DNA of 64,000 nucleotides from Perkinsela sp. CCAP 1560/9 (Eukaryota > Protista > Euglenozoa: Kinetoplastea): NCBI GenBank assembly GCA_965644495.1, contig CBFFSA010000001.1, positions 992,001-1,056,000 on the forward strand. The letters are read 5' to 3'. Numbering within the stretch: position 1 is the first letter of the stretch; each line of letters starts with the position of its first letter. Below are positions 13,881 through 64,000 of the stretch, one piece after another. The notes beneath the pieces were generated by a model. It did no database searches, was not told the DNA's origin, and saw only the letters and a program-made list of their open reading frames with translations. The position numbers were made by a program, and so were the translations under genes.

Positions 13881-14172
13881 AAACAAACTTATTACGGAAT
13901 TGTAATAATATTCGTAAGCAAAAAAAAATTGAAGGTCGTGAAATTGTGGCGGAGTTTCAAGATTTCTCTGTTGATCTGTTGTTTCCTTCACGAAATGATT
14001 AAGAATGTCTCCCACCTATTGAGGAACCCCATTTGTTGGGGCGCAAATCTTAATTTGCATGAGAATCATAGACAACACAATGATTTTTTTCGCTTTCAGT
14101 CCTCTGAACGCTTCGTGATGTAAGCGGAATATTACATTGTAAAAGCAAAAAAAAATCTTATACACATACATA

Positions 14173-17025: not shown

Positions 17026-17187
17026 CGCATTATCGACTTCAATGTCGAATTTTGGTACTTTATCACATGCAACTGCAATTTGTTTTTCTAAATTTCGTTG
17101 TCTGCCCAATTCAGTGCAAGGCTCTATTTTTTCATGCGTCGAACTAACGATTATTATTATATTATTTCCTCTACAAAAAAGACGAAA

Positions 17188-21696: not shown

Positions 21697-22065
21697 TACT
21701 AATTTTACACGTAAGTAGCATAGTAGTTAGTAGTGTTAGTAGCGTAGCAGTACGTGTTACAAGAGCAAACTGGTAAAACACTGAAGATAAATTATTCTCT
21801 GGTCAAAAAAGCACGAATATGAGAAACCTATTACGACGGAAAATAAAAGAAATGATAGACCTAACATACATGAAATGCATGAACACAATAAGGACATGCT
21901 AAAACGATTGAATGGGTGCACGTTCGGCTGTCTTTTAACCAAATTATAGTTTTTCTGGTTGATTCAAGTCAGCTTATCAGTCAAATTATATGTGATGTAA
22001 GTATTACAAAACTAAAGAAATTCTATGGGCTTATCTTAGTGCTTTTTCTCATCTTCTAAATTAAT

Positions 22066-24051
22066 ATGCTCAGCAGAAGACGCCTCTCTGACATGCTGAT
22101 TTGTGTAGTGATTCTTGTACAGTGGGGCTGTACAGACTCAGAGGCTGACAGCGCAGCAAAGACACACACATTTCAGGAACCTCATACATCTCCTGACATT
22201 CCTATTGGCGATGTATCCATCTCTTCACCGCCTACATTCAAGTCATCGAATGCCGAAACTGATGGGAGCGCGCCTTTTCAACCTATAAAGTTTGATGTTA
22301 AAAGGAGCGTCTCGTGGTGCGTAGAGGAGACCGCCCCCTCCGAGCCCTCTCTCACCCTCGTCGACATGAAGAGGTGGGGATCCACCGATATCCCCACTGA
22401 ACGAGGAACAGGAAAACTCAAGCCTCCTCCGTACGAAAAAGTCATCCGTGCACGCCGTACCCTCCCCCCGAACCGTACCCGAACTCCCACCACCCCCTCC
22501 CCCGACCCCTCCCCCAATCTTCCCCTCGCCGCCGTCTCCAGCCACCCCACCCGCCCCGGTTCCCACTGGCGTAACCTCACCGCCTCCTTTCGTCGACGCA
22601 CGGACCCCATCACCCCTGCCTTTCCTACCCTCACCACCACCACCACCACCCCCGACCGTCTCCCCGCCCCCCACCCCGCCCACTCCCTTAACCTCCCCCC
22701 GCACACCGCCCACGGTCGTCTCTCGGCCTCCACCTCCCCTACTCCCACTACGACTCCTCTCACGGCTACCCCCCCTACGCTCTCCCCCTCCCCCCCCTAC
22801 CTCTCCAGCTCGTTCTCCAGCCCCGACACCTCCCCGTGTGTCGCCACCAGTACCCGACTCCACAACCTGCCCCCGGAGAGGCTGGGAGGGGCCGCCTCGT
22901 TTCCCCCCCTCTCCCCCTCCCCTTCTTCTTCTTCTTTTACTATTACTACTACTACTGCTCCTTCTTCTTCTTCTTCTTCTATGACTTCTATGATGACTTC
23001 TTCTATGGCTTCTTCCTCTTCTTCTCTGATCACTTCCTCGGGTACTTCCCCTTCCTTAGTGGTGAGTACGGGGGAGGAGGAGGAGGAGGAGGAGGGAGAG
23101 ATCGGGGGAGAGTTGTTGAGTCCTCAAGAGAGGACGAAAGGGGGAAGAAGGGGTGAGGAGAGAACAGTGCATAACATAGGAACAACAACAGCAACAACGG
23201 CCCCCTCCGACCCACACGGGGTTCCGGAAATTACGTTGGTACGAACCGTGACGGAACGCCGGTCGGCCCCGGATGACCAACGAAAACGGGGAAGGGCGTC
23301 ACGGGATTTGGTGATTCCGTTACACCCGCGACGGAGTGCGGAGAGTAATGTGGGGAACACGCTTGTGGTGACCAGGAGTCTGTCACAGCCGAAGCCACAA
23401 GGTTGGGAAGGAGGGGGGATGGCGTCCCCGCAAAGGAGGGAGGAAAAAGGAGGAGGAGGGAAACTAAACGTTCGGGGGGATTCGGGGTCTCTCTTGGGGC
23501 CACAACAAAGTGGGGTCGTGGTGGAGGAGATGACCTCGGTGTTGCACGAGTTGATTGCGCGTTCGGAGCGAGGGGCGTTGCATCGCTCCTCTGGGGATAA
23601 GTTGCCGTTGAATTTTACTTCGTTTGGGAGGACCCCAACACGGGGTAAGTCACCTGGTGGAGAGGAGTTTGCGCAGCTCTCTCCGTCGAAGAAGATGCAG
23701 TATACCGGCTCCACGAACTGTGCCGTGCTTCGACATATCACGATTGTGAATGGTACGGAGGTGCACTCAAAGGAGGTGGAACGTCCATGTGATGCCCCGT
23801 TCTGGTCCGAGGTGAGTTGTGGGAGTTATCTGCTGCCTCAAGGGGAGCTACGCACATGCCCTTTCCTAGGGGAACTGGAACTGTGTCGTCCTTGTCGCGA
23901 GTCTAGAAATCACAGATCGCTGTCTCCCGGCGGCGACACGTTAAGCTCGCCCGCGAGAGCTCCGTCGCCCCGGCTTATTGACAGCTACTGGGATGACGCA
24001 GACGAAATATCCTCCAAGACTAAGGTGAGAACGCTTAGAAGGCTTCTCTAG
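22066..24051 (+). CDS. Hypothetical low-complexity protein (Pro/Ser/Thr-rich then Gly/Glu-rich), possible N-terminal signal
   Basis: 661-aa ORF on the coding strand; no recognisable domain. Confidence 0.6.
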   Translation: MLSRRRLSDMLICVVILVQWGCTDSEADSAAKTHTFQEPHTSPDIPIGDVSISSPPTFKSSNAETDGSAPFQPIKFDVKRSVSWCVEETAPSEPSLTLVDMKRWGSTDIPTERGTGKLKPPPYEKVIRARRTLPPNRTRTPTTPSPDPSPNLPLAAVSSHPTRPGSHWRNLTASFRRRTDPITPAFPTLTTTTTTPDRLPAPHPAHSLNLPPHTAHGRLSASTSPTPTTTPLTATPPTLSPSPPYLSSSFSSPDTSPCVATSTRLHNLPPERLGGAASFPPLSPSPSSSSFTITTTTAPSSSSSSMTSMMTSSMASSSSSLITSSGTSPSLVVSTGEEEEEEEGEIGGELLSPQERTKGGRRGEERTVHNIGTTTATTAPSDPHGVPEITLVRTVTERRSAPDDQRKRGRASRDLVIPLHPRRSAESNVGNTLVVTRSLSQPKPQGWEGGGMASPQRREEKGGGGKLNVRGDSGSLLGPQQSGVVVEEMTSVLHELIARSERGALHRSSGDKLPLNFTSFGRTPTRGKSPGGEEFAQLSPSKKMQYTGSTNCAVLRHITIVNGTEVHSKEVERPCDAPFWSEVSCGSYLLPQGELRTCPFLGELELCRPCRESRNHRSLSPGGDTLSSPARAPSPRLIDSYWDDADEISSKTKVRTLRRLL

Positions 24052-24329
24052 ATTTGTGCGATTATCGAATGGAGACATTGTAATATGTATAGTCGAATTC
24101 TCTCACCGGGATTAACGGTGACACATAGTAGATATTCAGTTAAACAGACCTAGGAAGACAAATACTTCTATATTGCTCATATTCTGTCATGTGATTTTCT
24201 ATCATGTTTTTTAGGTTTTAGCCTGTCAAATTTCCATACTTGATACACGTTTGGTATGCGTTGACTCCAAAATACACGAGCCAGTAGGGGCACCAGATAG
24301 AGCAGATCCGAGTACAAATAATTCAACCA

Positions 24330-27300
24330 ATGCAAGCCAAATCTGCGGAACAAAGTGGTGCGAGGAAGCATTTATTTTATCACGTGGATTACACCATGGT
24401 TGTTTTCACTGTATTTTGTTTTCTTCTTGGTTTAGTCTTGCTTGTGCTAAGTCCCTGGTCTCACGTCATTGTGTCTCGCTACTGTGAATGCACAAAATGG
24501 TGTGGTGCGGTGACCATTCCGACCATTTGTCTAAGCGTCCTTACTTGCGTGTGTCTTCCTCTCCTTGCGTACCGTTTCACGCTGTTTTATGACATTGAAC
24601 TCCCTTTCAGAAGAAAAATGAGAGGTCTGTACATTCCCATATTCGTACTACTTATTGTAGCTCTCGTATCAGGCGGTATTCTGACTTTCGTTCTCATATA
24701 CGTTTCTCAAAGTTCCGCAAATTATCAGAGAAGTCATGGGAACGTTGAGGGATTGGATGGGACGATCCGAATTGAGTGGGGAGAGGATGGTACACCGAAG
24801 CTGCAAGCAAAATCACATCGTGACGCCTTTTTTGGACAAGGATTTATCCATGCCCAGGAGCGTTTCTCTCAACTCGTTCTAAGTCGCGCCGCTTCGCAAG
24901 GACGCCTGAGCGAAATATTAGGTAATGCCGGCTTGGAAAATGATATTCGGGTCCGTACGCTGAATTTTGACGCTGTCGCCCGGGCAATGTGTGAAGGGAT
25001 TTCTCCACAGCATCGGTCTTGTATCGAATCCTACGCAGCGGGGGTAAATCTATACCGAAGCCGGCATCCGAAGCCTCCCCCCGACATGTTACTATACTAT
25101 GGACCTTTTAAAAACGTGGCTAAGGTGGAACCGTGGACGGCGCATGATGTGTGTCTGTCTTTGGTACAAATTCAGTCAGAACTATCTAGCAACTGTCAGA
25201 ATGAAATCGATCGCTGGTCTACCTTATTTTCAAATAGCTCTCGTGGAACCGATTACGACAAAGTTGAGCAACTTTACCCGTTTCACCGTTATCTTCGTGA
25301 TTTTGAGGGCAAGCCGTTTACCACAACAGTTACCGAAGAGGATTTAGCGGGTCCCTACTGCACTCCACACGTTTCTAAAAGTCGACACACTAGAGCTATG
25401 GAGGAGGATCATAGCTTTCAACGCGAAAAAGCTGTTTACGACGAAATGTTGGGCGAATGGCGTCAACGCACAGTGCCGTTTCAAATCGAAACGCCACACA
25501 CGGAAGAAATTCCTTCAATATCTCCTGTGCCTCCGCTTGATGCGTCTGCGGCACCTGACGGATTGAATTTATCCCCACACAGCACATCTCATGATTCTGA
25601 GGACAAACACCCTGCTCCAAAACCATCCGACTCAAGCTGGGAATTCTTTGATTTCGTACCCTTCCGTTCTTATATTGAAGACATGACCTTGAGCTGGTTT
25701 CAACTCGGCACCGATCCTTCTTCCCACAATACCTTAAAGCCGGACGCCCCTGCCTCCCCCAACCCTTCCCCTCTCCCTCCCCCCCGCGCATCCTGGTGGT
25801 CCGGCGCCTTCACCCCCCACGGCGGCTCCAACGCCTGGGTCACCCGCTCCCCCACCGCCCCCACCCCCACCCTCGGCAGCGACCCCCACCTCGAGATGTA
25901 CTTCCCCGGGAGCTGGTACTACCTCGCCCTCCACATCACCGACACCAACCAAACCTTCCTCGGGGCCTCCCCCCCGGGACTCCCCGGGATCACCGTCGGG
26001 GCCTCCACCACCCTCGCCTGGGGCATCACCCTGGCCATGACCGACCTCTGCGACCTCTACGTCATCACCCCCGACCCGAGTCGCCCCCAGACCCACTACC
26101 TCCACAACGGAACCTCCCTCCCCTATCGCACCCGACACGAACGGGTTGTGGTCCGCGGGAAGCAACGACCCGTGGCTCTCCAGCTTCGGGACACCCACTA
26201 CGGGCCACTGGTTCATCACCTTCCCGGGGTGGCTGGGGCTAACTCGGGTGTGTTGCTGGCCATGTGGAATGCGGCCCTGCAAGGGGGCAGTGCGGCAAGG
26301 ACCCTGGAGGGGTTCCTGCTGATGGTCACCGGGGAGGTGGCGACGGTCCGGGGGTTTCGGGAGGCCTGCCTGGAACGGATCGCGGCCCCCGCGTTGAGTG
26401 TGGTCCTGGGGGATCACGCCGGGGGGTATGGGTGGGGGATGACGGGGAGGCACCGGATTCGGCGACCCGGGCACACGGGGCGGTACCCGATGCCGGGGAA
26501 TGGGTCGTTTGACCCGGTGGGGGAGATTCCGATGAGGGAGCTGCCGTGGAAGGTTGTGCCGGCGGAGGCGGCGGGGGGTGGGGGGAAAGAGGTTGATTTT
26601 ATCACGGCGGGGAATAATAAAATGTATCCTCTGGCGTACCGTTACGCACTGGGGTATGACTATTTTCCCTATTTCCGTGCGACGCGTATGGCGGAGATGC
26701 TTGCTGGAAGGGGCTGCGACAGTGTTTCTCGAGCAGCGGAGATTCAGCTGGACAACCAGTCAAATTTGTGGACTACGTTGTTTCGTCCCTGGTTACAGAC
26801 TCAGCCCGGGTTACGGCTTCGTCATCCGTTTCTTCAGGAAATGTACACACGGTGGGAGGGAGCGGTGGTTCCCGGGTGTCGGTACCCTGCTGTGCTGTGG
26901 GAGTATCTCTCCATTGTGACACAGATTGCGTTTGAGGGACGAAAACGACGGGACCACGCACCGGTGGATCCTATTTTAGGATACTACTGGAGTGTGGACC
27001 ACGCCGGGAGTGTGGCGTTAGAACGGGCCTGGGAACAGGCCATCTACGCTCCCGTCGGGGGCTGGACGGAGGACTGGGGCTACGTGCAACTCCCTCACCT
27101 TACCCTCGCCCTTACCCCCTTTCGGTGTTTCGGGAACCGCTACCCAAGAAAACTGGGCGGAGACGAGTCTTCGTTGAATATGATGCGCGGGCGACGTCCC
27201 GGAGCCAGTCACGTGAGGAGAATCGGTCCCGCATTACGTCAGATTCTCCGTGTGGGAGAGGAAGTCCACGTCGCGAGTGTTGGAGGGGGATCAGAGAACC

Positions 27301-27431
27301 CTTTCAGTCCGTTCTATGACAACACGCTCCAGCAGTGGAGTGTGGGAGAATACCGGAAAAAGACATTCGCCGAAGTTGGGAATTTGACCCGTACGGACGG
27401 CGCACCAGTGCAGTACTTAAGAGTTAGGTAA
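24330..27431 (+). CDS. Penicillin acylase / AHL acylase family Ntn hydrolase with N-terminal TM helices
   Basis: FFGQGFIHAQERF, GRLSEILG, YAAGVN, GG|SNAWV (catalytic Ser), GSDPHL, PGSWY, AWGIT, THYGP, SENPFSPFY. Confidence 0.9.
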   Translation: MQAKSAEQSGARKHLFYHVDYTMVVFTVFCFLLGLVLLVLSPWSHVIVSRYCECTKWCGAVTIPTICLSVLTCVCLPLLAYRFTLFYDIELPFRRKMRGLYIPIFVLLIVALVSGGILTFVLIYVSQSSANYQRSHGNVEGLDGTIRIEWGEDGTPKLQAKSHRDAFFGQGFIHAQERFSQLVLSRAASQGRLSEILGNAGLENDIRVRTLNFDAVARAMCEGISPQHRSCIESYAAGVNLYRSRHPKPPPDMLLYYGPFKNVAKVEPWTAHDVCLSLVQIQSELSSNCQNEIDRWSTLFSNSSRGTDYDKVEQLYPFHRYLRDFEGKPFTTTVTEEDLAGPYCTPHVSKSRHTRAMEEDHSFQREKAVYDEMLGEWRQRTVPFQIETPHTEEIPSISPVPPLDASAAPDGLNLSPHSTSHDSEDKHPAPKPSDSSWEFFDFVPFRSYIEDMTLSWFQLGTDPSSHNTLKPDAPASPNPSPLPPPRASWWSGAFTPHGGSNAWVTRSPTAPTPTLGSDPHLEMYFPGSWYYLALHITDTNQTFLGASPPGLPGITVGASTTLAWGITLAMTDLCDLYVITPDPSRPQTHYLHNGTSLPYRTRHERVVVRGKQRPVALQLRDTHYGPLVHHLPGVAGANSGVLLAMWNAALQGGSAARTLEGFLLMVTGEVATVRGFREACLERIAAPALSVVLGDHAGGYGWGMTGRHRIRRPGHTGRYPMPGNGSFDPVGEIPMRELPWKVVPAEAAGGGGKEVDFITAGNNKMYPLAYRYALGYDYFPYFRATRMAEMLAGRGCDSVSRAAEIQLDNQSNLWTTLFRPWLQTQPGLRLRHPFLQEMYTRWEGAVVPGCRYPAVLWEYLSIVTQIAFEGRKRRDHAPVDPILGYYWSVDHAGSVALERAWEQAIYAPVGGWTEDWGYVQLPHLTLALTPFRCFGNRYPRKLGGDESSLNMMRGRRPGASHVRRIGPALRQILRVGEEVHVASVGGGSENPFSPFYDNTLQQWSVGEYRKKTFAEVGNLTRTDGAPVQYLRVR

Positions 27432-27593
27432 ATAGCCTGCGTGTAGTGCGGAATAAATAAGCTAATTCTAAATTCTTTTAAAGATAAATTTTTGCTGCGA
27501 AGAAAGCGAAAAAATAAGTATGAAAACATGTGAATGTCTTTTTTCGGATACTAGGATTCGAAGCTCGACTATTTTTCTTTTACTTACGTACCC

Positions 27594-28361
27594 ATGTTAC
27601 TTTCCACTTTGACCCCGATGTACCTCGCACTCCTCTCGCTTACCTCCGTTTCAAACACTGTGCATTGCCGATCTACCGCGCTATCCACACGCGACTACAA
27701 AATTATGGAACTCGAGAACGCCCTGGAGAGACTCCAAGACAAAGAGGTGTTTCCCAGCGTCGATGCGGTACAGAGATCCCGCACACGACTCTCCGCCATT
27801 GAATCCTCCATAGGGTGGTTTCCCTCAGCATCTGAAAAAGACAGACGCGCGGCGGCACGTGAGGAGCTTCGTGTGGCAGAGTACAGCCTTGCACGAGTCG
27901 AGCGTAAGGCACTGGACCTGCGATCCCGTCTGAAACCTCTCTACGGGGTATGGAGTCCGGAATTCTATCACGAGCACAAGGCGTCGCTGAAAAAGACATT
28001 TGAGGTAGTGCATGACGCGAGCTACAACAGCGCATGGTGGAGTAGTGTGTTCTCCCGTCGCGCAGAATCCTTTACAGAGGCTATTATGGGGTTTCTGTTG
28101 GAGTGGCTTATGTCCTATTTAGTGCTTTATCCTTTTGCGGGGGCGTACTTCCTGGCGTGGGTGACGCCTACGACGATTTGGGCGTACAGTTCTTCCTTTT
28201 CAGATATATTTACCGGGGCGGCTGTCTGGTTTATGTCATTGACTGCATTTCTTTTGCCACTTGGGTTGCTTCTTGGAGGACTTTATTTATGGATGAAGGG
28301 GCGGCGAAGAACTAGAAATTTTCCTTCATCGAATTTTTCACAGAATCGGAAAGACGTTTGA
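27594..28361 (+). CDS. Hypothetical membrane protein (coiled coil plus C-terminal TM segments)
   Basis: 255-aa ORF with hydrophobic N-terminus and C-terminal hydrophobic helices. Confidence 0.7.
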   Translation: MLLSTLTPMYLALLSLTSVSNTVHCRSTALSTRDYKIMELENALERLQDKEVFPSVDAVQRSRTRLSAIESSIGWFPSASEKDRRAAAREELRVAEYSLARVERKALDLRSRLKPLYGVWSPEFYHEHKASLKKTFEVVHDASYNSAWWSSVFSRRAESFTEAIMGFLLEWLMSYLVLYPFAGAYFLAWVTPTTIWAYSSSFSDIFTGAAVWFMSLTAFLLPLGLLLGGLYLWMKGRRRTRNFPSSNFSQNRKDV

Positions 28362-28556
28362 ATGCTATCATATTTGGGTGGACTAAGTCAAAGTGATTGA
28401 TCGTTGCTATTTTTCTGATAGGAGGCTTGCTAACTATACTGTATTTTTAATTTTCGAGTCCAAGTACAAGCATTGAAATGCATCTATTTTAATTTTTCAA
28501 CTTGGGTGCGTGTAATTTCCAACGGATCTTTTCTTGTCTTTTACAAGACTGGTGGT

Positions 28557-29345
28557 ATGGATAAATACATGTATGAGACGCGTCGCGGAAAAGCGAATGC
28601 AATGCTACTGCCTCAGGTTGATATGCTAGAACGTTTCATCGAAAACATAACCGTAAAGCACCAGACGTGGCGCAGTACAAAGAAGAGTTGGTCTGGGAGA
28701 AACAAGTCCACATCTGCGTGCGATTGGGAAGGTGTGAAATGTCAGGATGGGGAAGTTGTCGAAATTAGTTGGAGACACATGAACCTCGTGGGATTTCTAC
28801 AGTGGGACAGTTTGCCGCGATCCTTACTCACTTGTAATCTCGATAGTAATATATTTACCGGGACTATACAACTTGATTTATTGCCGCCGCAGCTCACGTA
28901 CCTTTGGTTAACATGCAACTCTTTTTCGGGTGAGTTGCTCTTAAACCATTTGCCGCATACATTAGAGACGCTCAATCTAGGTTATAATCGTTTCGAAGGT
29001 AGTGTCGACTTGTCACATTTGCCATTAAGCTTATTATATTTATGTCTCTGCAGTAACCAGCTTTCTGGTGGTGTTAATCTGTCCGAATTACCGTAGAAGA
29101 TAAGATATGTTTCTTTGTCGAATAACAAATTCACTGGATCAATTTCTTTGCAGGATTTTCCCGCATCATTTATAGAACTGCATTGCAATAAAAATTGTTT
29201 CTCCGGTTTAGTAGTGCTTGAAAATATTCCTGCACAATTCCGCGCCTTGCGCCTAGAGGAGAATACCGAGCTCTATGGTGAAATCGATAAAGCCACCAAG
29301 GTCGTTGACGAATTTCAATGTACATTATACAGGGATTCAAGTTAA
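28557..29345 (+). pseudogene. LRR protein with an in-frame TAG at 29094-29096
   Basis: LRR cap (ACDWEGVKC) and LRRs continue in the same frame after the stop (KIRYVSLSNNKFTGSI). Confidence 0.75.
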
Positions 29346-29947
29346 ATGAAAATTGCGCACTGCTATTACCGCATAGGTCACACTTTTTGAATCCAATTGG
29401 GTTCCAATTTGACTGTTTGGAAAAAGGTGGTAAACCAAATGGCCTTGCCGTGGCGGAGACTAACGCACACCGCTCGGTCTGCACCAGCTACGCATTTCCT
29501 CATTATATGAGCACCTGTATGGCCGGCACGAGATGTTTCTCTTCTCGAAGGTTTCTTTTTAGTTTCACTGTGCGCAACTGGGAGCGCTGTTGACGTCACA
29601 TAACTTTTCCGCGACGTGCTTTGCTGTTTGTCCGTTGTGCTCATCATTTTTGCTCATGTCTTCTATCGCATTTCGCGCCGCTTGGGTTCGTTCATCACCT
29701 CCGACAAGAGATTTTTGCAATTTTGCCGTAAAGTCCACCTGCGCTCCAGGCATCCGAGCCGTGGTTATAAGTTTACAACTACCGCAAGTATCATTATTAA
29801 TGAAAGGTTTTGAATGGTTCATTCTTTTACAAGATTTGCCATGTTTTTAATAATATTTGACCCCCCACATTTTTGTGCGCACCCCTGTATGTTTCAAGAG
29901 AAAATTCCTTTTCACCAAAGAACTATTTAACATTTCCTCATAAGACT

Positions 29948-53606: not shown

Positions 53607-55031
53607 ATGCGTTTTACCTCCGTAGATGAAAGCGTCCTGTCCTTAGAAGAGTCCTCCTTCTACGTACACACTTCTTATGCAGGTTGCTGGGTTGCTCTTA
53701 ATGAGGTATCACGTGCCATTTTGCAGTTAGAGCGAGAGACCGGAGAACGATACGAATCGATTTGGGCAGTAGGTTCTCAGGCTGTATATGTGGCGGAGTA
53801 TTTGGAGCAGCTTCATCAAGTCGATGCATTCGACAAAGTTCGGAAAGGGAAGAAGGAAGACAGCAACAATGTAGAGACTCGGGACACCGGACATCGAGGA
53901 GAAACTTGCCGATCGTCAACGCTCCTCGTAGTGGATCGCTGTTTGGATATGTATACGTTCCTAAGAGATCCTAATACTTACCTTGCTTCCTTACATGAGA
54001 GCATGGTTACCGAGGATTTTCCCAAACATTTGACATCCAAAGTCCATGGGCTGACGAGTAGTACGTTACTTCCAAAGGTAGCCAAAATAAAGACATCTCA
54101 ATGCAGAACACTTTTTGCCGATCTCCGTGATCTTAATATTACCGCAGTTCCTCAAGTTTTGGAAAACGCATGTGTGGACATCAAATCTTCCTTTCGGCCA
54201 GAGAAATTTCAATCAGAAATTGCCGCATTGCGTGATTTTGTACAGGTCGTTCCTGCGTGGCAACAGTATAAAGAAGAATTAGAAGTGCATACAAAATTAT
54301 TTCAAAGCATTCTAGATAAGAGAGAACGAAATAATTCATTTCAGTTCGCTTCACAAGATTTCATTGATTGGCGTAGGCTAGAGGATGTACTACTAGCGAC
54401 AAAATCCCTAGGTGAGTCACTTCGGTTACTTTCGCTGGTTTACTTGAACTCCTCAAATTGGACAACCGAATTATACGACAAAAGTATTCACCTTCTTACA
54501 CGCCGCTTCTGCACGCCACATGTAATCAGCAGTGTACAAAGGATGGAAAAACTCCTTCTGCTACGGCGCAACAGAGAGGGAATACCGCATTGGATGGCAG
54601 AAAGGAACAGTAAAACACTACTTTCTTCACAAACCCGGTTTGCGCAATGGGTACAAGGACAAAAGAATCAATCTCAAGATGCGAAGTGCTCATTCACACA
54701 ACATGAAGACGATACCACGTTTAGTCTACTTCTTAGTATGCTGCGCGCATCTCTTGCTGGGTTATCCGAATTGAATAAATTCCTTGATTGCATCATTCCT
54801 ACCATTTCTAGAAATTTTAATACCAATCTTGAAGAAACAAATAACGAAAGCGCCATGAATGTAACAATACTTTTTTTAGGGGGGCTCTCTTGGGAAGAGC
54901 TCGCTTTAATTCGTACCTTATCAGAGGATGGGCAAAAGCTTTTTCCTAGGATTCGAATTCTCACAACTTCGATGTTTACAGCTCCTGGATTTATCAAAAC
55001 AATAACGGATTATTCGCCACCAACACTATAA
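53607..55031 (+). CDS. Sec1/Munc18 family protein, Vps33-like (appears short at the N-terminus)
   Basis: DESVLSLE, LLVVDRCLD...TY...LHE, LFADLRDLN, ILFLGGLSWEELALIR, ILTT. Confidence 0.8.
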   Translation: MRFTSVDESVLSLEESSFYVHTSYAGCWVALNEVSRAILQLERETGERYESIWAVGSQAVYVAEYLEQLHQVDAFDKVRKGKKEDSNNVETRDTGHRGETCRSSTLLVVDRCLDMYTFLRDPNTYLASLHESMVTEDFPKHLTSKVHGLTSSTLLPKVAKIKTSQCRTLFADLRDLNITAVPQVLENACVDIKSSFRPEKFQSEIAALRDFVQVVPAWQQYKEELEVHTKLFQSILDKRERNNSFQFASQDFIDWRRLEDVLLATKSLGESLRLLSLVYLNSSNWTTELYDKSIHLLTRRFCTPHVISSVQRMEKLLLLRRNREGIPHWMAERNSKTLLSSQTRFAQWVQGQKNQSQDAKCSFTQHEDDTTFSLLLSMLRASLAGLSELNKFLDCIIPTISRNFNTNLEETNNESAMNVTILFLGGLSWEELALIRTLSEDGQKLFPRIRILTTSMFTAPGFIKTITDYSPPTL

Positions 55032-55290
55032 TGTTTGCCTTACGTGCAATGTACCATACGAGTCTGTGGTAATCTTAGTTTTCAGAAATTTTCACTTGCC
55101 TTTTTATCTACCGTATGCCCCTCAGTAATAGACCCGCCCCCCCAGTAACAGAGATTCGGCCCTTTTGGGGCTGACCCCCAGTAACAAGTTTTAAATACTT
55201 GTCTGAGCCAAATACTATTTGGTTCGGGAGGGTGGTTGGAGGGGGCAGGGGGTGTTTGGGTGGATGGGGGTGCTTGAGCGGGGTGAGGGT

Positions 55291-55385
55291 GATTACGATG
55301 GCGTAGTTATGATGGAGTTATGGTGATTACGATGGCGTAGGGTGATTACGATGGCGTAGTTATGATGGCGAATGGCGTAGTTGCG
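55291..55385. repeat. Imperfect tandem repeat (GATTACGATGGCGTAG / TTATGATGG)
   Basis: Directly visible repeats. Confidence 0.7.
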
Positions 55386-55905
55386 GGGATGGCAGGACAG
55401 AAAATCAACGCACCCATGAACAAAACGGGATAGACTATCCAATGCTGAAACAATGAACAAAAACGGATAAAAAAGCAAAATAAAAAAAGGTAATTGAGCG
55501 GAAAAATGTAAACAATTGTCTCTTTTCCAGAAAATGATCTAAAAAAGCATATTTTTTCATGGGGGATATCAGGGGGTCCCTACAAAAAAAGCGACAAACC
55601 ACCAATGCTGCAAAAATAAACAAAAAAACAAACAAAACTGAAACTAAATAAACAAAACTGGTACCGTAGGGGCGTGCGCTAATGGGCTCGGGGGCGGACA
55701 ACAAAAAAAAATGTGAGATAGGTATGGATTCGGAACATTCATCCGAATCCGGCGATCAAAACCCAACTTCGTGACCGTGCCGCTGTCGGCACATGCCCGC
55801 GCCTGCGCCCTCCCGTATAACAAGGGAAGGGTTCCCAAGCCAGGCCGTGGAGAGGTCGAGAGACCCGGTCCGAAGCGCGCATTGCTGGAAGAAGGGGTGG
55901 AGCAC

Positions 55906-56075
55906 GCGCGGATGGATTCTTGGGGGGCAGTGAGGGAAAGAAGAGGGCAAAGTTTGAAAGGCGCGGATGGATGCTCGGGGAGGGGGAAGTGAGGGAAAGA
56001 AGCGGGTGAAGTCGGGAAGTCGCGGATGGTTGCTTGGGGGGGGGGATAAGGAAGAGAAGCGGGCGAAGTAAAGTA
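55906..56075. repeat. Three purine-rich copies of a 55-59-bp unit (CGCGGATGG...GGGG...AGAAG)
   Basis: Units start near 55906, 55961 and 56020. Confidence 0.7.
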
Positions 56076-56204
56076 AGTAGGAAAGTAAGTAAGAAAGTGA
56101 TACCGTACATTCATAGAAAGTTAGAACTCATACTCTTCCCCCCCTATTATCTGCAAAAAAAAATGATAAAGATAACGATAACGATAAAGATACATTATCA
56201 CAGA

Positions 56205-56277
56205 CTTCATAAACACGCTTGTCACCGGTCTCAAGCCCGGCGTCGTCTTCTTAACAAGACGAAGTGTGAGGGTGAAG
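56205..56277 (+). ncRNA. Twister self-cleaving ribozyme (type P1 with a P5 hairpin)
   Basis: P1 CTTCA/TGAAG; U^AA; P2 ACAC/GTGT; GC (T2); P4 CCGG/CCGG with loop TCTCAAGC; P5 TCGTCTT/AAGACGA; GA-GGG (catalytic G, T1 with CUC). Confidence 0.9.
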
Positions 56278-56572
56278 AATGTCATTGTACGATAAAGTAC
56301 GATTTTTTAATATCTATTCATCTCTTCGTTTGTTGAACATACAGGTTTGTTGAACAAACACACTATATAATCATTGGTTCTGATCCAAAGATAGGATATA
56401 CATATTTTATTTACATGTTGACATTCCATGTGGGACCGAGCCTGGCACCACATTCGTGATTTTATTCCGGTTCGTTTTAGCCCTGATCGGGGAAAACATA
56501 CCGTTCGCGCCAAATTGCACTACCCCGAGGACCTTTGTGACTCACGGTGGACGATTATTATTATTATTATTA

Positions 56573-57346
56573 TTTGCCTCGAGGTCCTTCGGGCCTGACG
56601 GTTGGCACTTCACCTCGAGGTTCTTCGGAACTGACGGTTGGTGGTTACACTTTGTCTCGAGGTCCTTCGGGACTGACGGTTGGCACTTCACCTCGAGGTT
56701 CTTCGGAACTGACGGTTGGTGGTTACACTTTGCCTCGAGGTCCTTCGGGACTGACGGTTGGCACTTCACCTCGAGGTTCTTCGGAACTGACGGTTGGTGG
56801 TTACACTATGCCTCGAGGTCCTTCGGGACTGACGGTTGGCACTTCACCTCGAGGTTCTTCGGAACTGACGGTTGGTGGTTACACTATGCCTCGAGGTCCT
56901 TCGGGACTGACGGTTGGCACTTCACCTCGAGGTTCTTCGGAACTGACGGTTGGTGGTTTTACTTTGCCTCGAGGTCCTTCGGGACTGACGGTTGGCACTT
57001 CACCTCGAGGTTCTTCGGAACTGACGGTTGGTGGTTTTACTTTGCCTCGAGGTCCTTCGGGACTGACGGTTGGCACTTCACCTCGAGGTTCTTCGGAACT
57101 GACGGTTGGTGGTTACACTTTGCCTCGAGGTCCTTCGGAACTGACGGTTGGCACTTCACCTCGAGGTTCTTCGGAACTGACGGTTGGTGGTTACACTTTG
57201 CCTCGAGGTCCTTCGGGACTGACGGTTGGCACTTCACCTCGAGGTTCTTCGGAACTGACGGTTGGTGGTTTTACTTTGCCTCGAGGTCCTTCGGGACTGA
57301 CGGTTGGCACTTCACCTCGAGGTTCTTCGGAACTGACGGTTGGCAC
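56573..57346 (+). repeat. Ten copies of a 78-bp unit, giving 20 cUUCGg hairpins (36+42-bp dimer)
   Basis: CCTCGAG-GTCC-TTCG-GGAC-TGACGG alternates with CCTCGAG-GTTC-TTCG-GAAC-TGACGG. Confidence 0.95.
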
Positions 57347-57795
57347 ATCACTTCGAATGATCATTAAGGGTAGATTTCTTGTAGTCGTAAATTTAATGAT
57401 TATTGTAAGCAAAGATTGCTGATCATCACACAGTACCACTGCCGTTTGTGTTGTTTTCCAGTGTACTGGAAGTAAAGAAAAAGAAGCGGATAGAAAAAAT
57501 GAAATTGTCTGTGTGACGCACCTTATACGACTCGCGTAGGCGGGTCAGTTTTGCACTGCTTTTTTTTCGCGGATTTCTAATGCAATGCCTTTACGGCTAC
57601 GCATCTGTGTGCGTATCTAATAAAAGATGCTCAACGTATTTGACACCCCTTAGAGTTTTGTTTTACGCTTCAAAACCTAGAATGATGACAAGAAGGGGGG
57701 GAGGGAGTTGACCTGCGGTGCCAATGGGCATGCCTGTCACTGGGTTTGGTCCTGGTATAAAGGCCGTTCCTCGGTGAACCGTTCCGTCGTGTGGT

Positions 57796-58060
57796 GAGGT
57801 CCTTGGGACTTGCTTCGCGTTCCGGATTTTGTGATCCGAGGCCCCTTATGGCTCTGTTTCCACTACACTTGTTGTAGTGAGAGGTCCTTTGGACTTGTTT
57901 AGTGTTCCGGATTTTATGATCCGAGGCCTTTTATGGCTCCATTTCCACTACAATTGGTGTAGCGGGGTCCTTTGGGCTTGTTTCGCGTTCCGGATTTTAT
58001 GATCCGAGGCCTTTTATGGCTTCATTTCCACTACAATTGGTGTAGTGAGGTTTGGACTTG
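57796..58060 (+). repeat. About 3.2 copies of an 83-85-bp hairpin-rich unit
   Basis: Units start at 57796, 57881, 57964 and 58047; each full unit has four short inverted repeats. Confidence 0.88.
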
Positions 58061-58570
58061 GTTTGCGCGATGAGGAGATTTCGACCGGAGTATCGGAGAT
58101 TCACATCCAATTTGATGTTGTTTTTTAATGTATTGTTTCAAGTCCTTTTTGAGGTGATTGGTGGCACCATCCATAGCTTGACTGATGTTTGTAGGATGAA
58201 GGTGCTCTGGAAATGTGTGAACATTTCCTACGATTGTCAGAGAGAAAAAAAGAAGCTTTTGTTTCGAATTGTTACTTTTGAAAACGTGAAGAAAAGAGGG
58301 CATAGAAATAGGGAAGTCTACTTTTCAAAATGTGATCGCCTCGCTGTTTGATTCAGCGCGCCGTCAAACGTACCGCAGTTTAGAGCTTTTAGTAGCGGTG
58401 GTCTTTGTGAAACATTTGCTACGATTGTTTAGTGGGGTGTTAGTGTGCTTTACGAACGGTAGGTGACTCGGGATATGACGTCCGAAACTGATCTTCGAAC
58501 GATGTGAGCAAGCATATGGTCCCACTTTTGATGGATAAGAAGAAGAAAGAAGGAGAAAAAGAGCTATTCG

Positions 58571-58735
58571 GTGCCATGGCTTGCCAGGCGTACTGGGCTT
58601 GGTCCCGGTTCCAAGGTGCTTATGAAGTCTGTGATAATGAGGGTGTTGCTAATCCCTGGACAGTATGCTGCCCAGGGACACAGCAACTCCCCATTATCTC
58701 GGCGTAGTAAACACGCCTTGGCTTGCCTGGCACTG
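58571..58735 (-). ncRNA. Putative structured RNA (long hairpin plus decayed twister 5' half); 98-bp inverted copy at 62513-62610
   Basis: Nested complementary segments; on the minus strand CATTATCACAGACTTCATAA...ACCGG...CAAGCCC is shared with 56193-56238. Confidence 0.55.
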
Positions 58736-58930
58736 GACCCAATGCAGTCCCCGGGTGGCCCGTAGTGGACTAAGTGGCACAAGACGACCCACAGTGGCCC
58801 ATAGTGGCCCCAAAAATCGAGCGTCGCCGGAGAATCGTGACGACATAGAGGCAAGTGATTCTCTGATAAGTAGCGTACCTAGCTAAGTATAGTGAGGAGG
58901 GGCAACTGTATATGAGCGTAGAGTGTATGA

Positions 58931-60112
58931 TCATAGGGGGTTATTGGTTGAGTGCTGGTGGGGGGATTGTTGTTCACGAAAAAAAACATACGCATCAAGA
59001 TTTTTAGGATACGTGTATTTGTCCATCGGACCTGTGATAGTAGAACTGTCAGATACTCCATATCTGGAAGATTGTCCTTTGTGCTCTATTATCTTCTTTT
59101 TAACTGCTTCCACTTTCTCAGGGGTAAGAGGTGGATATCTTCCTTGAGGTCCATGTTTATGAAACACTTCCATGTTATGAACCATGAGAGCGCACGAAAA
59201 CGCATAGTAAAGAAAATCTGGACTACGAGTCCACTGCTTAAAAGCCAGCCATTTGCCACAGCACGAACGAGAAAAAATGTGTTCGACCCGCGATCTAAAG
59301 TGAGCCAACTTTCCATTGAAGCACATTTTACCATCTGCTTCTGAATCATGATGTTTCTGCATAGACTTAGATTTTGGGCGCTTCGAACACCAAATTTTGG
59401 CTTTAGAATGGGGTACTATTAATCTATCAGTAAGACCATCGTAAAATCCCCCGTCAGCAAGAGCGCGAACACGATTGTGTGCCAGAAAATCCAGAATACC
59501 ACTACAGTCCTGAATAACGGCGTCGGATGAGGCTCCACAGTACAATGTGTCTGCTGTGAAGCAAACATACCCAGACATTGTAGATGCTACGAGCGCTTTC
59601 ACGACGTGTGTAGCATATTTGGGTTGATAGCAGTGAGGCAAGCTATCAACGTACAGTGGCACTGTGTCCATCACCACCTTTATGTCCTTATCCCAAAAAG
59701 GAAGAACTGCGTTTGATTCATGGTGCAAAATATCAGAATCCAAACAAAGCCATGTATCCTTCATATCGGAATGCAGTTTTTTAAAAAACGCGGGTATCTT
59801 GTCAGAACAAGAACGTTCAGACCAACCGGTTCCGAATTTCAAGGATATGAGTTCTGATACAATGTCGTAGCTACCCCCACACCGCAAAAAAAGAAAGCTC
59901 GCAAAAATTTCTTCAAAGGGATAAAATTGTTTTAGAAAGGTGAGAGCGCGATGCGTTAAACCGCATAAAGACAACTCTGAATATTTATTTTCGTAGGGAG
60001 CATCAGGTTCAGGTGCATCGCCGGATGTATCAGGTGGTGCGTCACGGGTTTCAGATATATTAACGGGTGTGTCATATTCCGGGGTGTCAATACGGCCAAG
60101 CATCAGTATCAA
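58931..60112 (-). CDS. PIF/Harbinger-type DDE transposase (DDE_Tnp_4-like), intact
   Basis: FLFLRCGGSY HTH-like region, VMDTVP (D), GASSD, LADGGFY (D), LIVPH, FNGKLAHFRSRVEHIF (E). Confidence 0.85.
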   Translation of the reverse strand: MILMLGRIDTPEYDTPVNISETRDAPPDTSGDAPEPDAPYENKYSELSLCGLTHRALTFLKQFYPFEEIFASFLFLRCGGSYDIVSELISLKFGTGWSERSCSDKIPAFFKKLHSDMKDTWLCLDSDILHHESNAVLPFWDKDIKVVMDTVPLYVDSLPHCYQPKYATHVVKALVASTMSGYVCFTADTLYCGASSDAVIQDCSGILDFLAHNRVRALADGGFYDGLTDRLIVPHSKAKIWCSKRPKSKSMQKHHDSEADGKMCFNGKLAHFRSRVEHIFSRSCCGKWLAFKQWTRSPDFLYYAFSCALMVHNMEVFHKHGPQGRYPPLTPEKVEAVKKKIIEHKGQSSRYGVSDSSTITGPMDKYTYPKNLDAYVFFREQQSPHQHSTNNPL

Positions 60113-60284
60113 GTAGAGGAAAGATTATTATGATTTTATTAGAGGAAAGAAAGATTCTATATTAAATAAAATTCTTTGATTTACGATTTTTTTTTGAATT
60201 CCTTACTTCCAAATTCCTTACTTGCAACTTTTTCACTTACAACATAACCGCTTAAAACTTACTTGCGATTTACAGGCCTACAAC

Positions 60285-61181
60285 TTACTTACGACTTTTA
60301 AAATGCAAAGTGTTCGAACTTGAAGTTGAAGCAATGCGGGAAACGCGTTGCCGCTTCGGATTGCTGACCAGGTTTTCATCGTTCCGAACTTCAACTATCT
60401 CAACTTCCTGATCTGCGGCAGTCAAAGTTTGACGAGGAGGTCGGGCAACGTGAATAAGATGAGCATTCGAAGTCTTTCCCTTCTTGAGAATCCGCAGTTG
60501 AACAAGGTCGTCCCGGATAGAAAGAAGTTCAGTAGGAACATTCTCCTCCATTGAATTGCCAAGTTTGTCCATAATCTCACCCTGAACTTGGTGAACAAAC
60601 TTTCGATCAATTTCAAATGTTGAGTCACCTAGAACCGACAAAAAACTTGCTACCAACGCAGTCTTTGTGTCTCTCAGAACCTTCTTTTCATTGGCGCGCT
60701 TGCCCTCATACAAGTTCCAGAGGTTTCGCAAAAACTCCTGCAGAGAGCCCCGCTCCTCTGGATGCAACGCATGGTTAAAATACGAGCAAACTGCTTCGGC
60801 CGAACGCGGGATATATCTTTTTATAGAAACATCTTTTGCCCTTTTGATAAGAATAAGGATGTGGGCCACATGTCCGAACGCAAGCTTCGTACCGCAGAGC
60901 ATGCGACCCACGTACTCAGCACATGCGTTAAGAACATTTTCTTCCTTCAGACCACGAGCATAAATGTGGTCTAAGGTGTTGGCGGGAAGTCGTTCTCCAT
61001 CTTGAGGGGAATTGCACAACGGACAGTAGTTTGAACCTATGAGAACTGAAACCCTGTGACACTGAATACAGGGGTCCTTTACATCGCATTCGATGGGACA
61101 GGCACACATTACACACCTTCGGGGTTCTCCAAGACTTACGTTACGGTCTGCTTTGCAGCGTGGACAAAACATTTTTTCCAT
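60285..61181 (-). CDS. Zinc-ribbon protein (4 CxxC pairs), probable second ORF of the Harbinger-like element
   Basis: CPRC, CVMC, CIQC, CPLC at the N-terminus; NLS-like PKRQR; co-oriented 172 bp upstream of the transposase, opposite to host genes. Confidence 0.65.
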   Translation of the reverse strand: MEKMFCPRCKADRNVSLGEPRRCVMCACPIECDVKDPCIQCHRVSVLIGSNYCPLCNSPQDGERLPANTLDHIYARGLKEENVLNACAEYVGRMLCGTKLAFGHVAHILILIKRAKDVSIKRYIPRSAEAVCSYFNHALHPEERGSLQEFLRNLWNLYEGKRANEKKVLRDTKTALVASFLSVLGDSTFEIDRKFVHQVQGEIMDKLGNSMEENVPTELLSIRDDLVQLRILKKGKTSNAHLIHVARPPRQTLTAADQEVEIVEVRNDENLVSNPKRQRVSRIASTSSSNTLHFKSRK

Positions 61182-61827
61182 TTTAGTAGCTTCATTACTG
61201 TGAAACAGACGTTTAATTCTAGATGTACATAGTTACTTCATTTCGTTCTATTTTACAACTGCTGTACGTGGTCGACCAAAAATACATGAGAACGAAATCC
61301 TTACGAACTCAATATACACAACATAAAAGCAATCAAAAGGCACAACTTAAACTTTGAAGTGTCCAATCGTGGCACCGATTGTCCCATAGTGGCCCACAGT
61401 GTCCCATAGTGGCCCCAGAAATGTACCGAAGTTGCTGGGGGTCCACTGTAATCGCCGAGAGAGAAAAAAAACTCGCGCCTCTCGTGGTACGAGAAGGAGC
61501 AGGCTGAACAGAAGTCGGAAGATCCGGTGCGAAGTACGCACGAATGATTTGGATCTGCTTGAAAGAATTTGTGTGGGGGGCCTCCCCGAGAAGATGTGAA
61601 GTCCCGTGAGGGGAAGCAAGATCTCGCCCTGGTCGCTTCTGCAAAAAAAGGAAAAAAAAAGGGTTGGTAAATTACATCCCGCTATGGGAGACGAGTAAGC
61701 GAGTAAGTTGTAGGTTGTAAATATATTGCCAACGCCGCATTATTGAGTGCATTACGCGGGGCGCGTTGATAGAAAAAAAAAAAAAAGAAGGGAAATATTA
61801 GAAGTTTGCTTTAAGATGCAGGATTTT

Positions 61828-62298
61828 AGATCTTTATGGTGTTCGCAGCCTTATGACAGATTGTTTGTGACGTTTGTGATCCGTTATTCGAAATCTTTGT
61901 GCTTTAATCGGTTATTTGGGGATCTTTGTGACCCGTTGTTTGGGATCTTTGATATACGTTATTTGGGGTTTTTGTGACCCATTGTTCAGGAGTTTTTTGA
62001 TCGGTTGTTGAGGATTGGTTGTATGGGGATCTTTGTGATCTGTTTTTTTTGTGATCCTTTCGACCTCTTACTTAGGATATTTCTGATCGTTTGTTTGGTA
62101 TCTATGAAGTCCTTATGATTCATTGCATGGGATCTTTGTAATCGGATGTGTATATTACCTGATTGGTTTGTTTGTTTGTTTGTTTGTTTGTTATCTTTGT
62201 GATCGGTTCACTTGAAATCTTAATGACCCATTATTTGTTATCTCGTGTTTGGGATCTTTGTGACCCACCGTTTGTGGCCTTCGTGATCTTTGTGATCA
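61828..62298. repeat. Degenerate array of GGATCTTTGTGA(T/C)C motifs
   Basis: About 15 variably spaced copies in a GT-rich background. Confidence 0.7.
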
Positions 62299-62608
62299 GT
62301 GCTAAAAAAGAATCCGTAAAAAAAGAGCTTATCAAACGTGCGGGTACAGCACGTACTTGCACACCCTGGTTCCGTATCCCAGCCTTCTTGACGCACGTCG
62401 AAAGACGTGTTGCCGGGGAGATCACTCGGATACGGAAACGGGCCCCTTAAGTGGGAAGCATGCTGGGCTGTGAAATGACTGGGGAGAAATATTTTTTCTC
62501 TCTCGGCGATTACAGTGCCAGGCAAGCCAAGGCGTGTTTACTACGCCGAGACAATGGGGAGTTGCTGTGTCCCTGGGCAGCATACTGTCCAGGGATTAGC
62601 AACACCCT

Positions 62609-64000
62609 CAGTTTCTGTACCTTGTTGACTTATTTTTCTTTCCCTATTTCTTTTATCCGGACAATGAGGGAGGCTGATTCCTGCGGCTCGACGACGATAC
62701 GAGAAGATGACCTTTTTGCCCAAGAGGAGAAAACGCACACGCCAGCTCCTGGGACCAGTTTGAGGGTAATTAGCATCTTATCGCTGCAACTAGTACATAC
62801 GATGAATCCCTCTACACGACGCCCATACCAGAAAATATTACACCGGCCTGGCAAGACAAAATGGAAACGGCACTACAATCTTTGCACCGAGAGAAGCAGA
62901 CACCCGACACGGGGATGATTTTATCGGCAGACGAAGAGAGAAATCATTCCAGCGTATCAAGAGACTGTGCCCCCAATACGTCTGGCAAAGGTCAAGAAGT
63001 AACAAGCCAAACCCCAGAGCGGTACGAACCACATTCCATGGCCACAGCGAGGCTTCTCCCACGAAAAAGCCCTCTTTCTAGCCAAAAGTCGACGCCCAAA
63101 ATTTTCGAGAGAGGGGTTAGTAAAGATTCCAAGACTCGCCAACCAGCTAGACGAGACACAATGAGACGTCGCACCTGTCCAGTAGAAGTGTGCAACTGGA
63201 GCACCGCATCACACGGAGGGAAGTGGCAGGCCTACTACCATCATGTCGCAAGCCAACATAGCGATACTGTGCCTTCGGAATGGTGGGAAAAAGAAGGACG
63301 TTTCTTATGCCCCTCATGCGGCAAGCACTATGATCACAATAAAAAAGCTTCCCATGAGGAAAAATGTCAAGACTCCTTGGGCTCTTACACCTCGTCACTA
63401 ACCTGTGAGCCAGAAACCGAAGAGGCTTTCATTTCCCAAATTTACAGGGATTCGCTCCCGTCTCTTGATTGTGTCTGCTCTTACGCCATCAACACATGCA
63501 AAGATGTACCATTCCGATGCAAACAACAGTGGGCCTCTGTTTTGACTCAAACAATGGCTGCAGTGGTTAGAGAGAACTCGGTTGAGGCCTGGACACGCTT
63601 AGCGATGCTCCCAAAATGTGTCCTGCCCGCGCCCAAAAGAGGGGGACGAAAAGGAAATTCGTCCTATACCACGAAAACGGGCCAACGCATGGATCGCTCG
63701 GAATCCAGGGAATACGCGGCACTGTGGAACGAATCTGTTGCGCAAATGGTAAAGAAGCGGGAGAGGAACGACGATGAGGAAGTGGACGAGTCCGGCAAGG
63801 CGGCGAAACGAGCCGAGTTGCTGGCCAGACAAGGGGAGTTTTCCCGTGCGATGCAAGCTCTTACAGCAGCACCGATGGCACCTGAATCCGAAGAAACTTA
63901 CGAAAAACTCCAATCGAAGCACCCAGGTAGATTGCCTTTATCATCTTCCGTCACATTCCGACCCATAGAGGGAGAGCCTTTACATCTATCCGAAGGCGAA
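62609..64000 (+). mobile_element. 5' part of a CRE-clade non-LTR retrotransposon (continues beyond the window)
   Basis: Frame open from 62774 to the window end (absent from the ORF track): zinc fingers CPVEVC...HVASQH and CPSC...HEEKC, then AWTRLAMLPKCVL...RGG and GEFSRAMQAL...EKLQSKHP, typical of the region before the CRE RT; spliced-leader-like 19-mer at the 5' junction. Confidence 0.85.

Follow-up and report, generated by a model that had tools for sequence, protein, structure and literature searches.

The window analysed here is a stretch of 64,000 nucleotides from Perkinsela sp. CCAP 1560/9 (contig CBFFSA010000001.1, positions 992,001 to 1,056,000). It contains a twister ribozyme at 56206-56276 on the plus strand. 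This ribozyme is probably (we give this reading a probability of about 0.7) the first functional feature of a non-autonomous copy of a DIRS-like, tyrosine-recombinase retrotransposon that inserts into spliced leader (SL) sequences and works by the cut-and-restore route proposed below.

Every element of a twister is found in the expected order and place between 56205 and 56277 (Table 1). The Rfam model for twister-P1 (RF03160) aligns end to end with 56206-56276 and scores 34.4 bits, with E = 5e-6 for a search of 301 nt and 1.4e-4 for one of 8 kb. A model made from 26 of this genome's Rfam-found twister copies (R1) gives the same site 80.1 bits, which corresponds to E of about 1e-21 on the window. 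R1 detects no further twister in the 64 kb, and no other Rfam ribozyme is present in 55000-63000. The succession of P1, a U/A cut site, P2, T2, P4 with a loop of the type ..AAGC, GAGGG and T1 is the same as in the Oryza sativa Osa-1-4 and other RF03160 twisters. In contrast to RF03160 twisters, the window ribozyme has no P3 stem, an element found in 78% of annotated twisters, and has an added P5 hairpin. The essential twister stems are P1, P2 and P4, with P3 and P5 being optional (PMC5408937).

The ribozyme belongs to a sizeable family. The RF03160 model detects 54 sites in the 21-Mb assembly, and the genome-wide count that the original prediction had proposed as a check reaches at least 103 twister copies with R1 (150 of 4576 candidates scored). 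Subfamilies of these twisters differ in stem sequence yet keep pairing in P1, P2, P4, P5 and T1. For example, P2 is formed by ACAC:GUGU, CUCC:GGAG or CCCU:AGGG, and P4 by CCGG:CCGG, CCAG:CUGG or CCUG:CAGG, depending on the subfamily, while the sequence of P5 is different in every one. In a MAFFT alignment, changes on both sides occur in 11 of 18 pairs and 90.4% of cells are paired, compared to 32-52% when partners are slid. A model-based alignment of 40 copies that includes P5 yields both-sided changes in 15 of 18 pairs, with 88.5% of cells paired compared to 33-50% for slid partners. Counted by stem, such changes affect all four pairs of P1, all four of P2 and two of the five in P4 (88-90% of cells paired, 32-52% when slid).

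The pseudoknots and the core complete this picture. T1 is paired in 97% of cases and covaries, from CCC:GGG to CCA:UGG in five copies and to CAC:GUG in the L030 type. T2 is unchanged in 25 distinct copies. The conserved core bases of a type-P1 twister, namely the A 3' of the scissile bond, GC, AAGC and the G-A-G of GAGGG, are all in place, and the invariant core columns of the family (A6, A7, G12, C13, A28, A29, G30, C31, G63, A64 and G66 in the numbering of the window copy) are all kept at 56211-56272. Compensatory stem changes across subfamilies indicate selection on the fold over the history of the family. Because the genome holds such a family, as the R1 score and the counts of paired changes attest, a chance origin of the window motif is excluded. 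Motif and covariation thus confirm 56206-56276 as a genuine type-P1 twister ribozyme for which cleavage is predicted. The identity, scissile bond and pairings given in the original prediction are borne out, and its term 'canonical' fits the core; it does not fit the missing P3, the added P5 or a private U at 56231.

The ribozyme starts about 12-13 nt inside a larger element, 56194-62608, which splits one SL sequence. BLAST comparison of eight copies shows that their homology begins sharply about 12 nt before P1 and continues for kilobases downstream, whereas the upstream flanks are unrelated. The left junction, AAGATAC/ATTATCAC (here and below a slash marks the point of joining or cutting), is present at 13 genomic sites, and at 12 of these a scored twister lies next to it. 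The right junction, where GCAACACCCT abuts the 19-nt 3' part of the SL, occurs nine times. The intact leader reads GATACAGTTT. Its two flanking parts, GATAC/ and /CAGTTT, leave one ambiguous C, which also appears at the internal junction described below. Insertion has taken place at GATAC/AGTTTC with no target-site duplication, and the 3' end of the element has no A-run. The junctions are consistent with a simple reciprocal crossover between ...CCCTC/ATTATC... and ...GATAC/AGTTTC.... After the 3' part of the SL, which we take to resemble the 3' half of kinetoplastid leaders, a GT like that of an intron start follows in copies L043, L045 and L048.

A different partition of this region was also considered. 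The segment 56194-58640 would be a DNA transposon with terminal inverted repeats, and 58641-62608 a Harbinger transposon with 100-bp inverted repeats. It is ruled out by Harbinger-free copies that have the empty site, and by outer flanks that are the halves of one SL.

SL sequences are common in this genome. The 22-mer is present in 331 exact copies and the 3' 19-mer in 567, spread over all large contigs, for example at C1:2477636-2492935 with a spacing of 5.09 kb. Some copies continue into an intron-like GT, and others into an mRNA-like 5' untranslated region with an ATG. The scattered copies may be leader genes dispersed over the genome, retro-copies headed by a leader, or a mixture of the two. 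Immediately to the right of the element, in 62609-62918, the 3' part of the SL is joined to a T-rich stretch and a short open reading frame (ORF) from 62655 instead of an intron, and no large ORF follows 62655 within the window. By its sequence this segment looks like a retro-copied trans-spliced RNA.

The coding capacity of the family is found in relatives that share the twister head and the termini of the window element. Four of these (L040, L041, L044 and L050) have three ORFs on the twister strand between the internal copy and the 3' end. The first ORF encodes a gag-like protein of 347 amino acids with no Pfam match. The second encodes about 295 amino acids with the SAM-like and catalytic domains of phage-type integrases (Pfam E values of 3e-4 to 8e-3), and the third a reverse transcriptase (RT) of about 585 amino acids with an RNase H-like domain. 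The recombinase is recognized through two weak Pfam domains in two proteins that are 60% identical. These integrase-like proteins keep the R..HxxR..HY pattern (A3), and the top 30 or so Foldseek matches of an AlphaFold model, itself of low confidence, are Cre, Xer and Tn1549 integrases, the best with E = 6e-3. The nearest Atlas clusters of the RT are euglenozoan and include RT_RNaseH. Matches to gag-like or RT sequences are found after the twisters of L034, L019/L048, L036 and L025/L049 as well, and a European Nucleotide Archive (ENA) record has a twister 3 kb upstream of a split recombinase gene.

In the window itself, 56194-62608 lacks gag-like, tyrosine recombinase and RT/RNase H genes altogether, and about 1 kb of non-coding DNA takes their place. 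To judge from its sequence, the window element is a gene-less, non-autonomous derivative of this DIRS-like family, with the same ends and the same internal copy. The euglenozoan affinity of the RT also agrees with the assignment of the DNA to a kinetoplastid-like genome in the original prediction, as do the kinetoplastid-type SL and the arrangement of the ORFs of at least 200 amino acids, which from 762 to 55031 all lie on one strand.

The internal copy is the second structural feature on which the proposed mechanism depends. Read on the minus strand, 58595-58735 together with 61444-61458 consists of the last ~110 nt of the element fused directly to its first ~46 nt. The same structure occurs in every family-A copy and covaries with both termini between subfamilies. 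Inverted copies of the 5' end are present in 23 elements from at least six subfamilies (A plus B, C, D, E and F), which are all but one of the subfamilies for which downstream sequence is available; the adjoining 3'-end half is shown for family A. Inverted 5'-end copies sit 120-6100 nt downstream of the cut. Across the 23 elements, mismatches to the true 5' end number 20 in 550 positions before the scissile bond, 42 in 278 over the 14 nt that follow it and 35 in 236 beyond, with gaps in addition. Identity downstream of the cut is about 85%. A stricter description, in which identity stops exactly at the cut site, was discarded since in subfamilies B-E it runs about 10-15 nt past the cut. The internal copy is also not a second, antisense twister, which is ruled out by changed core bases and by the lack of a second R1 match in the window.

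Joined and inverted termini of this type are those of the internal complementary region in DIRS elements. However, the long inverted terminal repeats of the DIRS1 type are not present in this family, as either terminus is matched by the internal copy alone and not by the opposite terminus. Direct second copies of the 5' terminus are also absent from every locus examined, where only inverted ones occur, so the split direct repeats typical of VIPER/TATE elements are not seen.

Table 1. Features of the element and its ribozyme in the window
Feature	Position	Strand	Basis or remark
SL 5' part AACGATAAAGATAC, left flank of insertion	56180-56193	+	same 14 nt run into SL 3' part in 331 exact genomic 22-mers
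Element nt 1-17 up to scissile bond, including 5' strand of P1	56194-56210	+	homology of copies starts here; identical to 58624-58640
Type-P1 twister (P1-P2-P4-P5, without P3)	56206-56276	+	Rfam RF03160, 34.4 bits; R1, 80.1 bits; covariation
P1	56205/6-56209 with 56273-56277	+	sequence inspection
Predicted cut site	U56210/A56211, then A56212	+	
P2	56213-56216 with 56264-56267	+	
T2 pseudoknot	G56217-C56218 with G56235-C56236	+	
P4, around loop UCUCAAGC	56225-56228 with 56237-56240	+	
P5	56244-56249 with 56256-56261	+	
GAGGG	56268-56272	+	G56270-56272 with C56230-U56231-C56232 form T1
Tandem array, 78-bp unit, 9.9 copies, non-coding leader	56573-57343	+	TRF; BLAST against other copies
Second tandem array, 83-bp unit, 3 copies, in leader	57796-58049	+	TRF; common to L042, L043, L045, L046, L047
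Inverted copy of first ~46 nt of element (5'-end half of junction copy)	58595-58640	-	no difference from 5' end up to nt 19; fixed core positions changed after it
Inverted copy of last ~110 nt of element (3'-end half)	58641-58735, then 61444-61458 after Harbinger	-	inverted repeat with 62494-62608
Nested Harbinger-like transposon	58736-61443	-	DDE_Tnp_4 ORF 58931-60112 (Pfam E = 1.3e-9); 298-aa ORF 60285-61181 without Pfam match
Non-coding 3' body, in place of gag, recombinase and RT/RNase H genes	61459-62493	+	collinear with L042, L043, L045, L046
3' terminal segment ending ...GCAACACCCT	62494-62608	+	right junction; copy alignment
SL 3' part CAGTTTCTGTACCTTGTTG, right flank	62609-62627	+	567 genomic 19-mers, 530 preceded by intact SL 5' part

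These features suggest the following cycle. The element, which has no known promoter of its own, would be transcribed as a part of host transcripts, either from the SL that it interrupts or by read-through from the plus-strand gene cluster that ends 1.2 kb upstream. Cleavage by the twister between U56210 and A56211 would release an element RNA with a 5'-OH. The host portion would be discarded, and with it the opening 17 nt of the element, among them the 5' strand of P1. Once reverse transcription has taken place, the end of the cDNA could anneal to the internal junction copy and be extended on it. This extension would restore the lost 17 nt and at the same time create a junction between the 3' and 5' ends. 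The recombinase would then carry out a crossover between this junction and an SL sequence at their common C/A, leaving no target duplication. The window copy would be mobile only with proteins supplied by full-length relatives.

In its full form the proposal is that ribozyme and internal template constitute one system in an organism without gene-specific promoters. The twister would excise the genomic RNA, and the inverted copy of the joined ends would rewrite the lost 17-30 nt with half of P1, regenerating both the ribozyme and the SL-targeting recombination site. We advance this coupling tentatively, at slightly less than even odds. Past the cut, the internal copy still covaries with the 5' end at some linker positions, for which templated restoration alone is an inadequate explanation. 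Selection for pairing would account for them in an alternative, regulatory reading, in which the inverted 5'-end copy pairs with the 5' half of the twister in the same transcript and blocks or times cleavage without ever serving as a template. In favour of such an antisense interaction, complementarity is about 85% over ~46 nt and extends from P1 across the cut site and P2 into P4. However, with the copy so far downstream, a fast ribozyme would fold and cut before the copy is transcribed. Furthermore, the fusion to the inverted 3' end in family A is needed by a template for the circle junction and not by a regulator of the ribozyme, and identity peaks exactly in the part that the cut removes. 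Antisense regulation of this kind therefore seems unlikely.

Several other observations weigh against reading the window element as a mobile, recombinase-driven retrotransposon headed by a working twister. A scan of the whole window at Rfam gathering thresholds is empty, because the 34.4 bits of the twister fall below the RF03160 cut-off of 67.2. The twister-P1 search suggested in the original prediction thus gives an end-to-end match that is below threshold. According to the alignment, the score is low because P3 is deleted and the P5 hairpin inserted, and even the best genomic copy reaches only 39.1 bits with this model. The Pfam matches of the recombinase and RT are weak and below curated cut-offs, the structural model of the recombinase is of low confidence in its catalytic half, and a sequence search of the PDB with this protein gives no match. 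ORFs downstream of the twisters in subfamilies B-E, where 1.5 kb was covered, have nothing relevant by Pfam. A related element with gag, recombinase and RT genes, L052, has no twister within 1.6 kb upstream. Finally, the window element is without any of the element genes, a Harbinger transposon sits inside its internal copy, and its T1 carries a wobble pair, so that this copy may be dead.

The last group of observations leads to a reading in which the twister is true by descent, and the window copy, or else the entire family, has lost both cleavage and function and is dead transposon sequence. The nearest relatives, L007 and L008, have a ribozyme that differs from that of the window copy only at 56231, where they have C. 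Nearly all of the depth at this position in three DNA runs is also C, and the U is private to the window copy. The change turns one C-G pair of T1 into a U-G wobble, so that T1 in the window consists of C-G, U-G and C-G. Several other copies, such as L009, L025 and L053, have a broken T1 or P1. Of the sequencing runs found, a single one, doubtfully of RNA, shows no coverage of the region, and the others are of DNA type. On the other hand, all invariant core bases are intact in the window copy, and its sole change keeps a wobble pair of a type that natural twisters tolerate. In tests of more than 1000 of these, G-U wobbles in the T1 pseudoknot left cleavage nearly unchanged (PMC11662667). The compensatory changes across subfamilies also oppose a relic status for the family, and other copies of the window element are 94-98% identical to it, which implies that its spread was recent. 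We regard a relic as improbable.

The nested Harbinger-like transposon lies in the inverted 3'-end copy with CACTG on both sides, and L042, L043 and L046 have the empty site. ORFs for Tc1/mariner-type transposases (DDE_3, HTH_Tnp_Tc3_2) are found beside or inside other twister elements, at L047:337-1503, L018:3-653 and L053:8871-9881, all on the minus strand, and the one in L053 splits the recombinase gene. DNA transposons are common in this kinetoplastid-like genome, unlike the situation in trypanosomatids (PMC12278014).

The original prediction had proposed that the ribozyme cuts read-through transcripts at the end of the gene cluster. In such a scheme a twister placed or domesticated at the end of the plus-strand cluster would be a host RNA-processing signal that cuts polycistronic read-through and frees a host non-coding RNA, made of hairpin arrays, with a 5'-OH. 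The twister does have the sense orientation and lies 1.2 kb after the last ORF (55031) of a one-strand cluster, and downstream of it is extended non-coding DNA that contains tandem units resembling hairpins. However, the same ribozyme and flanks recur at many unrelated places, a split SL bounds the element and its relatives carry retrotransposon genes. The 78-bp array folds no more stably than shuffled sequence (z = -0.49), and its unit number varies freely between element copies. A host signal is largely refuted by this copy structure, and we consider it very unlikely. Cutting of read-through without trans-splicing remains a plausible part of the earlier proposal. A host end-of-cluster device does not agree with at least 103 copies in a mobile element that splits the SL, and the released RNA would not be a host RNA. 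It would be retrotransposon RNA from a gene-less derivative whose relatives encode gag, recombinase and RT/RNase H. The position of the twister element after the gene cluster is where transposons have piled up.

Just upstream of the element, 55720-55890 has a summed contig depth of 10,000-29,500 in DNA runs X1 and X3, compared to about 55 for the neighbouring single-copy gene. This segment is a very high-copy repeat, and it has no Rfam match.

Twisters are also clustered elsewhere in the genome. In C9:211794-334905 there are at least 16 matches in 123 kb, with 15 inside the run on the minus strand and the one at the far end (334839) on the plus strand. Three of these twisters are spaced by 6.53 kb, and two pairs are about 926 nt apart. 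The cluster may represent elements that lie in tandem or within one another, or conceivably RNAs of unit length with a ribozyme at either end. Such same-strand pairs are what a retrozyme-like cycle would employ, in which two twisters of the same orientation excise a unit-length RNA and the internal copy acts as a splint for ligation of its ends into a circle. The internal copy would indeed bring both ends of the linear strand together. But the window element has a single twister with no known cutter at its 3' end or any further Rfam ribozyme nearby, and the recombinase and RT of its relatives indicate a DNA route. We thus find a circular RNA of this type highly improbable for the window element.

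Two further twister sites are unlike those above. The match at C2:554623-554773 (58.2 bits) stops 13 nt before an intact, same-strand spliced leader, which is different from insertions that split the leader. In L030:1501-2739 (C2:40912 and six copies with equal scores), the twister with the CAC:GUG form of T1 has a G in place of the U before the cut site, and an ORF with an RRM_1 domain follows about 500 nt after it.

The proposed cut-and-restore retrotransposon can be compared to several known systems. With DIRS-1 of Dictyostelium and DIRS1-like elements it has in common genes for a gag-like protein, a tyrosine recombinase and RT/RNase H, an internal region of inverted, joined termini and the lack of target duplication (PMC7192593; PMC6681497). 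DIRS-1 cannot retrotranspose without its internal complementary region, which is proposed to supply the ends that an incomplete transcript lacks (PMC7192593). Its transcript falls short because it begins within the left one of two long inverted terminal repeats. In the elements described here, by contrast, the two ends do not form inverted repeats, and the 5' end of the RNA would be determined by a ribozyme. The internal copy lies before gag, after a leader of 0.1-6 kb, rather than beside the right end, and integration is into a specific host sequence, the SL.

The VIPER/TATE elements share the kinetoplastid host group, the set and order of gag-like, recombinase and RT/RNase H genes and the absence of target duplication (PMC6681497; PMC12278014). 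They differ in their split direct repeats (A1 ... B1 A2 B2), where the present family has only the inverted 5'-end copy, and the same two surveys mention no ribozyme in them. CRE, SLACS and CZAR of trypanosomatids also insert at one fixed SL position in the orientation of the leader. These, however, are long interspersed nuclear elements (LINEs) with a restriction-like endonuclease, poly(A) and target duplications, and no ribozyme has been reported for them (PMC12278014). The site used here, after the 14-nt AACGATAAAGATAC of the leader, and the enzyme, a recombinase, both set the present family apart from them.

A parallel among ribozyme-bearing retrotransposons is Perere-3 of Schistosoma, in which twister variants process the 5' end (PMC8501958). 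The Perere-3 twister sits at the very 5' end of the element and is transcribed together with upstream DNA; its cut fixes where the RNA begins and takes away the 5' strand of P1, as is proposed for the present family. Perere-3 regains this strand through target-site duplication at each insertion, which proceeds by target-primed reverse transcription (PMC8501958). In the present elements the lost 17-30 nt are instead constant within a subfamily and mirrored by the internal inverted copy, and they are accompanied by a tyrosine recombinase and no target duplication.

The 5' hepatitis delta virus (HDV)-like ribozyme of R2 frees the element RNA from a host co-transcript. The HDV-like ribozymes of R2 and of L1Tc/ingi (Pr77) act in the way proposed for the window twister, in that a ribozyme at the 5' end liberates the RNA of a promoter-less retrotransposon in this manner; activity of the Pr77 ribozyme is cited in PMC12278014. 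They belong to a different class, which cuts at its own 5' edge and loses no part of the ribozyme. A type-P1 twister leaves one P1 strand behind, and the internal copy would be a solution to the repair problem that arises from this loss.

Neither the class of ribozyme nor the idea of 5' processing is new. What does appear new is the combination of ribozyme and internal junction copy, along with the SL target, the class of element and the lineage of the host. A full-text search of the literature found no paper that ties twisters to kinetoplastids, Euglenozoa or recombinase retrotransposons, and the large survey of natural twisters names none (PMC11662667). The present family extends the range of twisters to a kinetoplastid-like lineage and adds a second kind of SL-targeting element to the CRE/SLACS LINEs. 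To our knowledge, only HDV-like ribozymes were known from this lineage before, and processing of the Perere-3 5' end in Schistosoma is the sole natural role of a twister documented so far.

For annotation of this genome, more than 100 intergenic 'structured RNAs' are to be read as transposon heads and not as host genes. The family also makes a second, mechanistically different role for a natural twister testable, in a recombinase retrotransposon whose junction copy mirrors what the cut removes, and it offers a natural experiment on the use of the DIRS internal complementary region. If the proposed route is true, it would be a new answer to the question of how a type-P1 ribozyme is inherited through an RNA copy, and this twister would be the first ribozyme tied to the DIRS order.

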